Source of the DNA: Macrostomum hystrix
Taxonomy: Eukaryota; Animalia; Platyhelminthes
DNA: 64,000 nt
Assembly (NCBI GenBank): GCA_950097015.1
Contig: CATNEN010000038.1
Coordinates: 12,276,001 to 12,340,000 of the forward strand
Reading direction: 5' to 3'
Shown here: positions 26,718-34,668 of the stretch, piece by piece
Layout of the letters: each line of letters starts with the position of its first letter
How positions within the stretch are numbered: position 1 is the first letter of the stretch
The notes under the pieces: generated by a model
The model's database searches: none
The model's input: the letters and a program-made list of their open reading frames with translations, nothing else
Told to the model about the DNA's origin: nothing
Program-made: the position numbers and the translations under genes

Positions 26718-27188
26718 CGAAGTAGCAGCAACAACACAAGCAGCAGCAACAGCAACACAAGCAGTAGCAACAACAACAACACAAGCAGTAGCAGAAGCAA
26801 CACAAGCAGCAGCAGCAGCAACACAAGCAGCAGCAGCAACACAAGCAGCAGCAGCAACACAAGCAGCAGCAGCAACACAAACAGTAGCAGCAGCAACACA
26901 AGCAGTAGCAGCAGCAACACAAGCAGTAGCAGCAGCAACACAAACAGTAGCAGCAGCAACACAAGCAGTAGCAGCAACAACACAAGCAGTAGCAGTAACA
27001 ACACAAACAGTAGCAGCAGCAACACAAGCAGAAGCAGCAACAACAACACAAGCAGTAGCAGCAACAACACAAGCAGTAGCAGTAACAACACAAGCAGTGG
27101 CAACAACAACAACACAAGCAGTAGCAGCAGCAACACAAGCAGCAGCAGCAACACAAGCAGCAGCAGCAACACAAGCAGCAGCAGCAAC
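26718..27188. repeat. (GCA/ACA/CAA/GTA)-triplet minisatellite, left part
   Basis: Units such as GCAGCAACACAAGCAGTA. The same array resumes at 30017. Confidence 0.9.
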
Positions 27189-30016
27189 GGGGACAAAGGA
27201 GCACCGTTCACGCCGGGTCCCTGAACAACTGGAGCAAGCTCCAGATGACTAATTGCTCTACCACTCAGACAAGCCTCCGCAACAAATACCGGACACTTCC
27301 ATTAACATTACCTGCCGAGGGGGACGAATTGCACCTCGTGCTGCGCCTTCGCGGTGGCGAGGCGCCACAAGCCAGCCGCCGCCGCCCACGGCGCCGCCGC
27401 CCCCACTGCCGCCAGCGACCCAGTGACGGGGAGGAGCCCGGCCATCTACTTCGTGTTCTGCAGTTCAACTGCAACGGCATCAAAGCCCGTTCCACGGAGT
27501 TGGCCGCGTGGCTCCACCGTCACAAACCAGCAGCGGCTCTCCTGCAGGAAACCAAGCTCAAGCCGGGGCAAACCTACCACCCACCGGAAGGGTACTGCGT
27601 CGCCGCACGCTGCGATGGCCTACCCAAGCCGGACCTGCTCCAGCCAGCCACCACACCGGACCAACCACTACCGTTAGACCAGTCAAGCATTGCCCCAGAA
27701 GCCGTGCACAGGCGCCAGCAAACCCGCCCACGGTGCCGCCTTCGGTGGCCGGACGGCAGGGCCACTGAGTGGTGTGCAGGCTGCCGCTCAGGCCGCTCAG
27801 CCTGCAACCGCCGCAACGAGCCGTGGCCGACCACACGGCCTACACCAATGCCACAGCAGCAGCCCGTCGTTGCCCTTGCAGCCGCGACCGCAGCGGCGCC
27901 CGAACGCCAAGCCGCCACCCGCCGCAACAAACAACCAGGCGCAGGTGCGGGGAGGGGGGGCACCCTCATTCTGGTCCGCTGCGATATCCCGTGCCAAGAG
28001 ACACCAAAACCGGACGATAGCTCCCGCGGCCTCCTTGACATTGCCACGACCATCATATCGCCCAGAAAGGACCACGACATCATGCTCTCGTCAGTCTACG
28101 CGCCACCAACCAGTGCCCAACGCCAGGACAACTGGCAACCGCCACTCCACCTGATCCCGCAGCACCACCGTTCGGTAATCGGAGGGGACTTTAACGGGCA
28201 CGGCACCTGGGACGCGTACCAAGAAGAAGATGAACGCGGACGGATCCTGGAGGCCTGGGCAGGTCTCAACCAGCTCACCATCGCCAACGACGGCAAGCAC
28301 ACCAGGACTAACCCGGCCACCGGGGGCCGATCCGCCCCGGACCTCACCTGGTGCTCCGCCGCGATGCACCGCACTGTCGCGAGCGACTGGCGCACTGAGG
28401 GGGAGGCCGGATCTGACCACCTGCCCATCAGTTTCCCACTGCTACGCCCCAGCGGAAACCGCCAGAGCCGCGGCGCCCCTCGCTGGAGCTTCGCCAAAGC
28501 AGACTGGGCAACTTTCAAGGACGAACTAACACAGCTGGACCTCGAAAGGGCGGCAACCCGCAGTGAAACTGCGGGTCTCGACCAGCTCCATAGTGAGCTC
28601 GGCCACGACATCCTGCGAGCCGCAGGACACAACATCCCACGCGGCGCCCGCCGTGGCCCACGCAAACCTTTCTGGACGGCGGACTGCGAGGCCGCCAAAA
28701 GCAGCTGCGCGCGTGCCCGCCTCGACGCGGAATCAGACCCAATCGAGGCCAAAATCGCAACTTACAGCACCGCTAGAGCCCACTACCACCGCACCATCCG
28801 GGAGGCTAAAAAGACCGCCTGGCAGGATCTGACGGCAGAGCTCGACGTCAACAGCGACCTATTCGGACTCCTCCGAAACATGTACGGCGACAGGCCACCA
28901 CCACGCTCAAGCGTCGCCATCGAGCGGACGCAAATAGGCGGACACCCGCCTAGCCGCCCAGCCCGGACCGACTTGGAAAAAGCAGAACTCTTCTGCCAAC
29001 TGTACAGCAGCGTATCACGCGTTGAACGCAGCACACAGGACCGCCCGATTAACCGGGAGGCGCACGCGGCCACGCATGCCGAGTGCCACTGCCAAAGGGC
29101 AGGCATGTGCGCACCCTTCACGTTGGTGGAGCCCCAAACGGCACTCCGGGCCCTCAAGCCCGGCAAATCACCAGGCCAAGACTCTATCCACAACAGCATG
29201 CTTAAGCACCTGCCGCCATCTACCCAAGACAGAGCGCTCAACCTCATCAACAAGTCGTGGCTGGAAGGCGCCTGCCCAACTCAGTGGCGACGCAGCCTCA
29301 TTGTCCCGATCCCAAAACGCGGCAAGGACGCCAACAAGCCGGACTCCTACCGCCCCGTTGCACTAACCAGCACGGTAGCCAAAGTAGCGGAGCGTATGGT
29401 CATGCTGCGACTGCGCCACTTCCTGGAGTCTAACAATCTACTATGCAACAGCCAGGCAGGCTTCCGCCAAAGACGCTCCACGGAAGAGCAGATCGGCCGA
29501 GTCTGCCAGGACAACTTGGACGCCCTGGAGCACCACCCAGCCCACCGAGCGATCCTATGCCTGCTGGACTTTAAGTGCGCCTACGATAAGGTGTGGCGCA
29601 AAGCCCTGCTCGCCAAACTCGCCCGGTTGGGCGTCCCAACCTGCACCATCCGGTGGATCCGCGGTTTCCTGACCGACCGGCGGGCCCAGGTCCGCTGGGG
29701 GCGCTGCGTAAGCAAAGAACGCATTTTCCGCGACGGCCTCCCACAAGGCAGCGTGATTGCCCCGCTCCTGTGGATCGCCTTTGTTAACGATCTCGAGGAT
29801 TGCATCACGCGGGCAGCCCCACTTTGCGCTTCGAGTCTTTTCGCCGACGACTCGGCTCTGCTGGCCACCGCCCGCAGCCTCGACGACTGTGCTCGCCTCC
29901 TCCAGCCAGCCCTGGACGCCGCGGCAGACTGGTGCCGCACCTGGAAGGTCGTACTGAGCACAAGCAAATGCGTCTATGGCACTTTCAGCCTAGATGAAAC
30001 AACAACCAGGGGGACA
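27189..30016 (+). mobile_element. Non-LTR retrotransposon (APE + RT, I/Ingi/Jockey-like group) with N-terminal ubiquitin-like segment; truncated at both ends
   Basis: ORF from 27245. APE motifs QFNCNGI, LLQETK, GGTLILVR, SVYAPP, GGDFNGH, PDLTW, SDHLPI. RT motifs KSPGQDSI, IVPIPK, SYRPVALTS, QAGFR, LDFKCAYDKV, GLPQGSVIAP, LFADD. Homology stops at about 29998 with no RNase H or 3' tail. Clade assignment is tentative. Confidence 0.93.
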
Positions 30017-30263
30017 CGCAGCAACAACAACACAAGCAGTAGCAGCAACAACACAAGCAGTAGCAGCAGCAACACAAGCAGTAGCAGCAGCAACACAAGC
30101 AGCAGCAGCAGCAACACAAGCAGTAGCAACAACAACAACACAAGCAGTAGCAGCAGCAACACAAGCAGCAGCAGCAACAACACAAGCAGTGGCAACAACA
30201 ACAACACAAGCAGTAGCAGCAGCAACACAAGCAGCAGCAGCAGCAGCATCAGCAGCAGCAGCA
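30017..30263. repeat. (GCA/ACA/CAA/GTA)-triplet minisatellite, right part
   Basis: Same units as 26718-27188. Confidence 0.9.
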
Positions 30264-30739
30264 AAAGGTGCCAAGACTGATGCATAAAGTCGGTTGGATA
30301 CAACTAAAACTGCTGACTTAGGTTCCTGATTGACGTCTGACTGTCTAAAGTGCATCTTCACCTTTCTTATTTCTGCTTTAGCGGGATCAATCTTTCTCCA
30401 ATTGTGGGCTCAGCTGACTAGTATAATCATTTTTCCGGGATCACTCAATCCTTCAACTGAGCTAGCTTCTAGCTACGACAGAGCGATGCGCTGTGGCAGC
30501 GGTTGCCAGGGCAACCGACGGTGTTGCGTGAAACCGTCACAGCAAACTTCATTAAATCTCTGGTCTACAAACGTGGAATAAAATTCCTCACTTAAAAATT
30601 CATTTCATGGGTTCAGATGGATGATTTAGCTGCATGTGAGGGATTAGCTGGAGAAAATTGCTTTTTATTTTGTACTTTCGTGATATGATGTGAGCTTGCT
30701 ACGGCTTTAAGGTTAGGTTAGTGGAAGTAGAGTAGGCCG

Positions 30740-32125: not shown

Positions 32126-32369
32126 GGGCAGAACTGTGCTGTGGGCAGCATTGTCTAGGGCAAACCATTTTTGGTTTGGCAGCCCCGATCCATCAGTCCG
32201 CAGCTCCTTGACGCGCCATTGAATCCAAGAATAAGGGAAGGGAAGGGAAGGAGAACTTCTGCATGCACCTGCTAGGAGAATGAAGTTGTTTTCTTTGCAC
32301 AATCTCTTTCAGCGATTTCCCGGCCAGTTCAATCAAAGACTGATCGACGTTGATCCGGTCCTCATCGCG

Positions 32370-34668
32370 ATGTCGCCTGCAACTTTGCTCAGCAACATCA
32401 GCAGCACCGGCGTCGAGTTGGACTGCGAGGAGAGTCGTCTGAGCGAGGGCTTCGCAGCCATCAGCGTCCCGGTGATCGCCAGCATCTCGCTGCTCTCTGT
32501 CATGCTGAACGGTTTCAACATCGCTGTCTTCAGTCAGCGCAAGATGGTCACACCAACGAACAGCATCCTGCTGGGCATTGCAGTCAGCGATCTAAGCAAA
32601 GTGCTCATCTTCCTGGCCGTGGCGGTGGTCGGAACCCGATGGGACCGGGCGGCCAGCAGCTACGCCTGGCAAGCTAGCGCGCTCGTCTGCAACGTCGTCA
32701 TGTACCTTATGCACGCCTACGCACTGTGGTGCGGCGTCCTGCTGGCCCTGTTCCGCTTCTTCTACTTGCAGTACTATGCGGCTGCAGGCACCAAGGTTTG
32801 GTTCGGCTTGGCCCGAGCCCGGCTCGCCCTGCTGCTGGCCTTCCTGGCCAACGCCGCCGCCCTGGCGCCGTACGCGGCCAACCTGCGCGTGGAGTCGCCA
32901 AACCTGGAACTGGACGGCGCTGGCAGATCGTTGCAGATTAACAAAAGCGAAACAATTTACCAGGTGAAAACCAATTGATTGGTTATATGATTTGGAAAAA
33001 AAATTAGTCTGCAAATATTTAGGCAAGGTGACAATGGGACAAGTAGACAATGCGACAAGGTGACAATGCGACGAGGGGACTAGTGACAATTTGACAACTT
33101 GACAAGGAGACAATGTGATAAGTTTGACAATTTGACAAGGTGAAAAATGACATAGTGTCAAGGTAACTAATTGATAAGGTGACGAATCCATAACGTGACA
33201 AGTTGATAAAGTGAAAAATTGATAAAGTGACAAATTGATAAAGTGACAAATTGATAAAGTGACAAATTGATAAGTTTACAAATTTATTACGTGACAAATT
33301 GATAAGTTTACAAATAGATAAGTTTACAAATTGATTACGTGACAAATTGATAAGTTTACAAATTGATTACGTGACAAATTGATAAGTTTACAAATAGATA
33401 AGTTTACAAATTGATTACGTGACAAATTGATAAGGTGACAAATCCAAAAGGTGACAAATTGATAAGGTGACAAATCCATAAGGTGACAAATTGATAAGGT
33501 GACAAATTGATAAGGTGACAAATTGATAAGGTGACAAATCCATAAGGTGGCAATTTGATAAGGTGACAAATTGATAAGGTGACAAATTGATAAGGTGACA
33601 AATTGATAAGGTGACAAATTGATAAGGTGACAAATTGATAAGGTGACAAATCCATAAGGTGGCAAATTGATAAGGTGACAAATTGATAAGGTGACAAATT
33701 GATAAGGTGACAAATCCATAAGGTGACAAATCCATAAGTTAACAAATCCATAAGGTGACAAATTGATAAGGTGACAAATCCATAAGGTGACAAATTGATA
33801 AGGTGACAAATTGATAAGGTGACAAATCCATAAGGTGACAAATCCATCTAGGCTGATAAGTTAATGAACTGATTAGCCTATTTGGGCACCAACGATAATC
33901 CCCAAACGCTGTCGCAACGCCCAACAGGTGAAAATCGAACCTCGGCACGCATTCAAAATCCGGCTGTTCAACTGCCTGGCCCAGAAGGCGCTGCCCTGCC
34001 TGCTGATGGCCGGCCTCTGCTGCTGCATCATTCGCTGCCTTCGTCGCACTGAGCGCCGCCGCGAGTCGCTAGCCAATCAGAAAAGCCCCTCGGCAAGGCA
34101 CGAGCGTCGCTCGCGGCATCATCGGCGAACAACCGCCTTCCTCATGGTCATCATCGTGCTGTACATTGTCTACGAGATCCCAGTCAGCATGCTCAATATC
34201 CTCGAAGACGACGCTCTCGGACTGCCTGGCGTCCAGTGCTTTATGCGCTCGTACGCACCGCTGCTGAACACTCTGGCTCTGGTGAATAACTCGGTGAACT
34301 TCATCCTGTACTGCTGCATGAGCAAGCAATTCCGGCAGGCATTCAATGCCACCTTCGGACTGAGCCGCCTGCTGCGCCGGAAGAGGCCGGTTCAGGACAG
34401 CGCCCGCACAGAGCGACAGCGCCTGCAGCCGGGCAGCTCTAGGATTGGCGCTCGCGACTTGGGTGGCGGCCTAGGTGTCGAGAGCGGGGACGAAGTCGAT
34501 GCTGGGGCTCAGTCAGCTCAAGGACAGGCGCTGCCAGTCACCCTGATTCTGGCTACCTGGCAAGGTGCCGGCTGCTCAACGCGGCAACCTGTTGATGGCA
34601 GCGACGACAGTCATTCCTTTTGCGGCAGCGCATCAGATGCGCTCAGCTACCCCTGCCTCGAGTACTGA
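32370..34668 (+). CDS. Class A GPCR, neuropeptide-receptor type (FMRFamide/myosuppressin/srw-like), 2 exons
   Basis: Exons 32370-32963 and 33928-34668 (phase 0). TM1 N..NIAVF, TPTNSILLGIAVSDL, TM3 ALWCGVLLALFRF, TM5 KALPCLL, TM6 RTTAFL..YEIP, TM7 NNSVNFILYCCMSKQFRQAF. An upstream acceptor at 32312 makes the start uncertain. Confidence 0.88.
33020..33847. repeat. 16-bp minisatellite (GTGACAAATTGATAAG) filling the GPCR intron
   Basis: Tandem copies with variants (TCCATAAG), degenerate at the 5' side. Confidence 0.95.

Follow-up and report, generated by a model that had tools for sequence, protein, structure and literature searches.

Why does a flatworm retrotransposon encode the last ten residues of ubiquitin ahead of its endonuclease? 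The question is raised by a 64,000-nucleotide stretch of the Macrostomum hystrix genome (contig CATNEN010000038.1, forward-strand positions 12,276,001 to 12,340,000; hereafter the window, in which all positions are numbered from 1). Window positions 27329-27358 (+) encode a ubiquitin-tail 10-mer ending in LRLRGG, in frame with a downstream Arg-rich tract, an apurinic/apyrimidinic endonuclease (APE) domain and a reverse-transcriptase (RT) domain, RVT_1. By chance, this 10-mer would be expected 2.6e-7 times across the six reading frames of the window; the observation is real and beyond chance. Comparisons of sequences place it in a clade of long interspersed nuclear elements (LINEs) that encodes only the last ten ubiquitin residues ahead of the endonuclease, and we propose that the tail is probably a cut site for host deubiquitinases. 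In the fuller form of this proposal, to which we give about even odds (a probability of roughly 0.5), a ubiquitin-tail mimic replaced the 2A peptide of related LINEs, and host deubiquitinases would use it to remove a leader that is ribozyme-encoded and mostly AUG-less.

The ubiquitin tail and the 2A slot

Window positions 27245-30280 (+) form a 1011-residue open reading frame (ORF) with the Pfam domains Exo_endo_phos (the APE) and RVT_1. The translation and the Pfam assignments together bear out the first-pass annotation of this DNA, which had placed a ten-residue ubiquitin tail in frame ahead of the APE-RT of a retrotransposon without long terminal repeats (a non-LTR element). When the translation was compared with the PDB using phmmer, ubiquitin residues 65-76 were aligned and no others. 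The window's own 220-Mb assembly contains seven copies of the 5' region of this element (family A), three of them at 100% identity and the others at 88-91%. The tail is found in all seven genomic copies and is thus a family-wide feature, as had been supposed, and no one-off chimera.

How widely is the tail kept? A search of the genome with the leader and APE protein returned relatives at 45-51% identity, with matches starting right at the motif, and this genome holds at least seven families with the tail motif that are 45-51% identical in the APE. Family A is identical to the ubiquitin tail at 10 of 10 positions; the motif is LIQVLRLRGG in family B, LHQVLRLRGG in family C, LYTVMRIRGG in family D, LNLVMRLRGG in family E, IHEVLRLRGG in family F and LQLVMRLRGG in family G. 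Likewise, the public protein P0172 (UniParc UPI0007A11279) has LLSVMRLRGG ahead of the same kind of APE; its accession is near that of a Macrostomum lignano entry. The shared consensus is [LI]-x-x-V-[LM]-R-[LI]-R-G-G, and every family has acidic residues before the motif and an Arg-rich tract and the APE after it. V-[LM]-R-[LI]-R-G-G is kept in all seven families and in P0172, and the flanks have diverged.

Is it the peptide or the RNA that is conserved? For the invariant residues V, R, R, G and G, the families use 3, 3, 6, 3 and 2 different codons, respectively; Arg is written as CGC, CGT, CGA, CGG, AGG or AGA, and Gly as GGT, GGA or GGC. The remainder of the leader is unalignable among families. 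The varied codons and the unalignable leader argue for selection on the peptide, not on the RNA. As judged from this synonymous codon turnover, the tail motif is under protein-level purifying selection while its surroundings diverge, in keeping with what the first-pass annotation had anticipated. The sole altered motifs, VRRLRGG and RLRGR, occur in broken copies. In the AlphaFold2 (AF2) model the APE core is confident, and the motif and the basic tract have predicted local distance difference test (pLDDT) values of 30-42, obtained with a shallow alignment; the motif is therefore not predicted within the APE fold.

The residue that follows Gly-Gly is also restricted. It is E, N, H, D, D, A, D or N, and never Pro; Asp, Glu or Asn stands there in six of eight families, compared with a background of 14% (p ~2e-4, with the relatedness of the families ignored). 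In the window copy, the proposed cut after G27358 would leave Glu as the new N-terminus. These residues agree with the earlier suggestion of a defined N-terminus with N-degron potential.

What occupies this place in related LINEs? In this genome, LINEs that stand further off (30-40% APE identity) have ..GD(V/I/L)ExNPGP in the same N-terminal slot, and 2A was found at this place in the 10 copies examined from this genome, which represent about six families. Similarly, the closest outside full-length match, P0001, has 2A in the same slot, and 2A is present in 32 of 171 public relatives. The annotation's statement that 2A occupies the same position in other APE-type elements therefore holds for sister families and public relatives alike. 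The leaders of the families with the tail motif (the RGG families) contain no 2A motif of the form ..GD(V/I)ExNPGP. The motif xRxRGG is found in 0 of the 171 public relatives, a count to be read in the knowledge that leaders lacking an AUG would escape gene callers that begin at ATG. With P0023 and an alignment of motif plus APE (A2) as queries, two metagenome scans returned no further RGG-type element, and a word-indexed protein search with the family-B leader gave no match.

A maximum-likelihood tree, built with a quick IQ-TREE search from 41 rows (APE plus linker), unites the RGG families in a single clade, with an SH-aLRT value of 100, nested among 2A-bearing lineages, and P0023 is its sister. 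Two of the 2A families, L049 and L055, also begin with an in-frame ribozyme of the hepatitis delta virus (HDV) type. The most economical interpretation is that the ubiquitin tail took the place of 2A once, within a conserved module composed of ribozyme, leader, separation signal and APE. The sequences of the tail and of 2A have no similarity that can be aligned. As for the origin of the tail, the family plurality at the variable positions 68 and 69 is H and L, ubiquitin's own residues, and we lean towards the capture of a ubiquitin 3' coding fragment, or else very close mimicry; the synonymous sites are saturated, and codons cannot decide between the two.

The 5' end and the ribozyme-encoded leader

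Where does the element begin, and what encodes its leader? All seven family-A copies start at the same base, 27189 in the window (GGGGACAAAGG...). In six of the seven, the DNA before the start is made up of CAG/CAA-type repeats or of another LINE copy's 3' end with its (GAA)n tail; the remaining one, L004, follows a short (CAG)5 run in DNA that is unique otherwise. Because all seven copies share their start base in differing upstream DNA, 27189 is the true 5' end, and the 5' truncation postulated by the first-pass annotation did not occur.

The first 71 nucleotides (27189-27259, +) fold as an HDV-like self-cleaving ribozyme, as indicated by the shared exact 5' end, a partial Rfam match and covariation. 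In the proposed structure, a nested double pseudoknot with a C in J4/2, P1 pairs 27189-27194 with 27217-27222 (GGGGAC/GUCCCU), P2 pairs 27198-27203 with 27254-27259 (GGAGCA/UGCUCU) and P3 pairs 27204-27206 with 27214-27216 (CCG/CGG). L3 is UUCACGC (27207-27213), P1.1 consists of two pairs (27208-27209 with 27223-27224) and P4 pairs 27229-27235 with 27238-27244 (CUGGAGC/GCUCCAG). J4/2 spans 27245-27253 (AUGACUAAU) and contains the candidate catalytic C at 27249. The predicted cut falls 5' of G27189 and coincides with the first base of the element; all copies begin at G1 of P1.

Support for the fold comes from several directions. Rfam reports a partial CPEB3-ribozyme match over P1-P3 (E=1e-3; 22 bits compared with a gathering score of 35). 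Further matches below threshold are to CPEB3_ribozyme at 13.4 bits and, in the related family L058, to HDV_ribozyme at 25.4 bits compared with 50 (E=0.04), and all sub-threshold matches are to HDV-type families. An Rfam scan of the whole loci returned only isrG, a CUG-repeat artefact. Across families, 93% of the cells of alignment A1 are paired, as against 77% in shuffles (0/500); eight of 16 ribozyme pairs have changed on both sides, and controls with slid partners are 31-52% paired. For example, P3 is CCG/CGG, ACG/CGU, GCG/CGC, ACC/GGU or CCC/GGG depending on the family, and P1, P2 and P1.1 also covary. The helices of the double pseudoknot are found in all families, with conserved CUAA and CGAA motifs in J4/2. 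Families B and D are without P4 and have an earlier P2' (GGAGAC/GUCUCC and ACGGCC/GGCCGU), and in families E and F an unusual insertion of ~40 nucleotides splits the 5' strand of P1.

Similar ribozymes stand in other LINEs of this genome. L049 (1908-2020) and L055 (reverse strand, from ~2564) have a ribozyme core with L3 UUCACGC or UUCACGU, in frame with the 2A leader; the ORF frame relative to the ribozyme differs between these 2A families and the RGG clade. L058 (2203-2290), and likewise L059, has a canonical HDV-like ribozyme in the 5' untranslated region, with a 7-bp P1, a 9-bp P2 and J4/2 ACGAAAU. In this family stops and an ATG of its own follow the ribozyme, and neither 2A nor the RGG motif is present.

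The leader of the window copy comprises 56 codons (27191-27358, +), the first third of which is translated ribozyme. Leaders are 41-83 residues long across families, each partly ribozyme-encoded, and the motif lies about 40-80 codons into the ORF. The leaders of families B, D and E contain no AUG before the motif. Since the residues upstream of codon 71 (in ubiquitin numbering) are conserved as amino acids, translation starts further upstream. In the young subfamily represented by the three copies that are 100% identical, an ATG lies inside J4/2 (27245-27247), next to the candidate catalytic C27249; the older subfamilies L005 and L007 have GGG in its place, and with the ATG the young subfamily may have acquired a conventional start codon recently.

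Does the leader contain anything more of ubiquitin than its tail? The first-pass annotation had read it as the C-terminal half of a diverged ubiquitin fold. Six families' leaders gave no PF00240 match at E<=10, and the ORFs gave none at E<=1. The 30 residues that precede the tail match ubiquitin at only 0-3 of 30 positions in all eight families, which is chance level (in the ubiquitin sequence used for these counts, the last 12 residues agree with the PDB alignment). The shifted-frame peptide EQAPDD*LLYH, taken earlier for damaged ubiquitin, is encoded at 27230-27275, which falls on P4, J4/2 and P2' of the ribozyme and ~16 nucleotides beyond. Its stop sits in a frame other than that of the ORF, which is open from the 5' end; the supposed stop and frameshift are not supported. 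Likewise, the RTL at ubiquitin-like spacing (RTL-x10) occurs in family A and is missing from the six other families; with identity in that region at chance level, we rejected it as a sign of homology. We therefore rejected a ubiquitin-like domain or a frame-shifted remnant of one, given the shared 5' end, the overlap with the ribozyme, the absence of a PF00240 match and the confinement of similarity to residues 65-76.

Proposed cleavage by host deubiquitinases, and the alternatives

How could a tail without a body serve the element? We propose that the element would be read within a host or neighbouring transcript, from which the ribozyme would free the element RNA. Ribosomes would then initiate at something other than a normal AUG, or enter from upstream, the CAG repeats being in the Gln frame of the ORF in the insertions checked. 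The result would be a junk N-terminus dictated by RNA structure. Host deubiquitinases would cut after Gly-Gly, as in natural ubiquitin fusions, and release a protein composed of nuclear localization signal (NLS), APE and RT with a defined N-terminus, in most families one of the possible N-degrons Asp, Glu and Asn. In this scheme the motif would do the job of 2A in the sister LINEs, having replaced 2A once in the ancestor of the clade. As would be expected of a deubiquitinase substrate, Pro never comes directly after V[LM]R[LI]RGG. More tentatively, the swap of 2A for a body-less ubiquitin-tail mimic processed by host deubiquitinases might expose an Asp, Glu or Asn N-degron that keeps the endonuclease-RT short-lived; we hold this extension to be possible, and less likely than the cleavage itself.

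Several points weigh against host cleavage and the scheme around it. First, a deubiquitinase substrate would also be expected to present ubiquitin's globular body, and PF00240, phmmer and the identity counts all fail to find one. Efficient catalysis by deubiquitinases requires the globular surface of ubiquitin, and peptides of the LRGG type are 'very poorly hydrolyzed' (PMC7477763). It is to the proposed cleavage by deubiquitinases that our even odds apply. Second, a single protein with the motif, P0172, was found outside this genome. Third, the tree comes from a quick search on APE plus linker only. Fourth, no Rfam ribozyme match attains the gathering score, and the ribozyme structure was derived from the same sequences on which it is scored. 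Finally, among assembled contigs of sequencing runs, the DNA runs hold the element, and two runs that we guess to be RNA (labelled as another organism) hold exact RT pieces of 233-261 nucleotides; these contigs provide no RNA 5'-end or expression evidence.

In the host genome, L065:1084-2139 (-), equivalent to G000:C38 at ~16.63 Mb, is an intronless gene for a UCH37/UCHL5-like deubiquitinase of 351 residues, and its one exon contains a complete Peptidase_C12 domain. A predicted complex of this UCH37-like protein (residues 1-235) with a 45-residue leader received a score of 0.01, which counts neither way.

Could the motif instead stay on the protein? It might have been selected for a function other than cleavage, either as a docking strand for a recogniser of ubiquitin's beta5 strand and tail, or as a nuclear-import or ribonucleoprotein-assembly module together with the basic tract. 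Conservation does extend to L67 and V70, beyond the LRGG residues that bind the cleft, a basic tract follows the motif in every family, and peptides with the tail only are poor deubiquitinase substrates (PMC7477763). However, the motif occupies the exact slot of 2A, a separation signal, in the sister lineages, the invariant Gly-Gly and the avoidance of a following Pro have no obvious role in docking, and AF2 shows no packed structure. We regard such a retained module as unlikely, though to be taken seriously.

Alternatively, the site could be cut by an agent other than a general host deubiquitinase, such as a host protease dedicated to some ubiquitin-like modifier or a protease activity hidden in the ORF of the element itself. 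Elsewhere, N-terminal Josephin or OTU deubiquitinase domains do occur in some LINE ORF2 proteins (PMC13405545), and ~550 residues of the ORF here are without a Pfam assignment. Against this, Pfam detects no protease domain in the ORF at E<=1, and it is ubiquitin itself, not another modifier, that the motif resembles (family A agrees at 10/10 positions). We judge a different protease to be improbable.

A translation start or an RNA function could also produce conservation at this place, with codon 71 as the real start and MRLRGG as the N-terminus. Families D, E and G have AUG as codon 71; in families A, B and F this codon is CUG, which ranks first among near-cognate starts, and no AUG occurs elsewhere in the leaders of B, D and E. 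Yet V70 (GTG/GTC/GTT) and L67 (TTG/CTG/CTC/ATC), both upstream, are kept as amino acids and hence translated, family C has CTC at codon 71, and nucleotide identity across the motif is low. We rejected AUG or CUG at codon 71 as the start on account of this upstream conservation at the amino-acid level, and the whole explanation is very improbable. The account in the first-pass annotation, a captured full ubiquitin-like domain since degraded by stop, frameshift and 5' truncation, draws on the 10/10 tail of family A and its RTL at ubiquitin spacing, and with the intact common 5' end, the ribozyme under the shifted frame and leaders of merely 41-83 residues, it is refuted for extant elements and retains next to no credence.

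Element structure and insertion sites

The full-length copy L010 shows what the intact element looks like. Its single ORF of 1483 residues, open from the first bases of a 4.5-kb element, encodes in order the 56-residue leader ending in LRLRGG, the basic tract, APE, RT, RNase H and a CCHC finger, and a (GAA/GAAA)n tail follows. With APE, RVT_1 and RNase_H (Pfam) in one ORF and a simple-repeat 3' tail, it has the characters of an APE-type non-LTR retrotransposon. The window copy, aligned to L010 by blastn, corresponds to the first 2.8 kb (27189-29996, +). In it, an Arg-rich, NLS-like spacer separates the motif from the endonuclease (27359-27448, +; the tract of 14 residues lies at 27377-27418), a basic tract being present in all families. 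The APE domain (PF03372/PF14529; 27449-28429, +) and the RT domain (RVT_1, E=4e-31; 29309-29980, +) follow. Homology to the full-length element ends at 29996, ~0.8 kb into the RT region, and RNase H and the CCHC finger are missing; the window copy, 3'-truncated inside the RT region, is therefore dead. After the abrupt end at 29996 comes GAAACAACAACCAGGGGGACACG, and then the upstream satellite again (29996-30020). This 3' truncation is atypical for target-primed reverse transcription and suggests a deletion by repeat recombination or a template jump.

The satellite in question is a CAG/CAA-rich tandem array with 21- and 66-nucleotide units, the insertion target, which Tandem Repeats Finder delineates at 26721-27186 upstream of the copy and which resumes at 30020-30264 downstream. 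CAG-type repeats or LINE repeat tails also precede copies of other families, with exceptions such as L018, L021 and L041. Junctions are mostly ..CAGC|GGGG.. inside CAG/CAA repeats (L001-L007, L019-L022, L036 and L042, with the same three exceptions), and at such a junction the repeat consequently reads as polyglutamine in the ORF frame. Read-in translation from upstream AUGs or from host polyglutamine exons is thus possible.

Is the preference for such repeats reflected in the protein? The APE contains a clade-specific insertion with four cysteines, CRLRW..WCAGCRSGRSAC (CRLRWPDGRATEWCAGCRSGRSAC), at 27734-27805 (alignment A3), which is kept in all RGG families, P0023 and P0172 and which the sister LINEs with 2A lack. 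This insertion may form a zinc knuckle that takes part in recognising the CAG-repeat target; AF2 confidence there is low. Elsewhere in the window, a 232-residue ORF at 32280-32978 (+) resembles the start of a rhodopsin-type G-protein-coupled receptor, with hydrophobic helices and a ..GIAVSDL.. motif, and is probably a host gene exon.

Relation to known systems and implications

L1Tc has a ribozyme-plus-2A layout, and L1Tc/ingi-type elements of Trypanosoma resemble the present clade in having an HDV-like ribozyme at the extreme 5' end and a short separation signal in the leader before the APE (PMC3383444, PMC3894237, PMC3708506). They and other single-ORF LINEs with 2A also share the single ORF of APE, RT and RNase H with a zinc finger, and the sister 2A families of this genome have exactly the L1Tc layout. 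The signals themselves differ: ..GD(V/I)ExNPGP there, the ubiquitin tail ..VLRLRGG here. Whereas 2A acts by ribosomal skipping of a peptide bond and leaves Pro as the new N-terminus, the tail would need a post-translational host protease and would leave Asp, Glu, Asn, His or Ala.

Linear ubiquitin fusions, such as UBA52, RPS27A, polyubiquitin and the ubiquitin insertions of cytopathic pestiviruses, are cut by host deubiquitinases. As in the clade described here, the cut is expected right after LRLRGG by host enzymes with any next residue but Pro; in contrast, those fusions contain the whole 76-residue fold, and only the last 7-10 residues are present here. Papain-like protease sites (LXGG) of coronaviruses and arteriviruses, like those of other viral deubiquitinase-like proteases, offer a precedent for a body-less, ubiquitin-tail-like peptide as a polyprotein cleavage site. 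There, however, the protease is encoded by the virus, and Pfam detects no protease domain in this LINE. Finally, R2 and other LINEs with a 5' ribozyme are similar in that self-cleavage sets the 5' end of a co-transcript and the AUG-less ORF is open to the 5' end (PMC3774820). R2 differs in its restriction-like endonuclease and its rDNA target, and neither a ubiquitin-tail nor a 2A signal has been described for it.

In full-text searches of the literature, no paper emerged in which a non-LTR retrotransposon is connected with LRLRGG, with a ubiquitin tail or with a ubiquitin fusion, and the 2A papers do not mention ubiquitin. A 2026 preprint describes LINE ORF2 proteins with N-terminal deubiquitinase domains, a related but different arrangement (PMC13405545). 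An N-terminal separation signal in ribozyme-led single-ORF LINEs is thus known, and what appears to be new here is its ubiquitin-tail form.

How ribozyme-led single-ORF LINEs start translation and dispose of an N-terminus dictated by RNA structure is poorly understood, and 2A is the sole separation signal described at this place. If our proposal is correct, the clade would have found a second, host-dependent solution in place of 2A, and no transposable element would have been shown before it to process a polyprotein through the deubiquitinase system of its host. Nature would thereby prove that a deubiquitinase site in cis can consist of 7-10 tail residues, and would offer a compact cleavage tag, with the seven diverged families already marking out what it minimally requires. 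The protein output of these retrotransposons would then be linked to the deubiquitinase activity of their host and possibly to the N-degron pathway.

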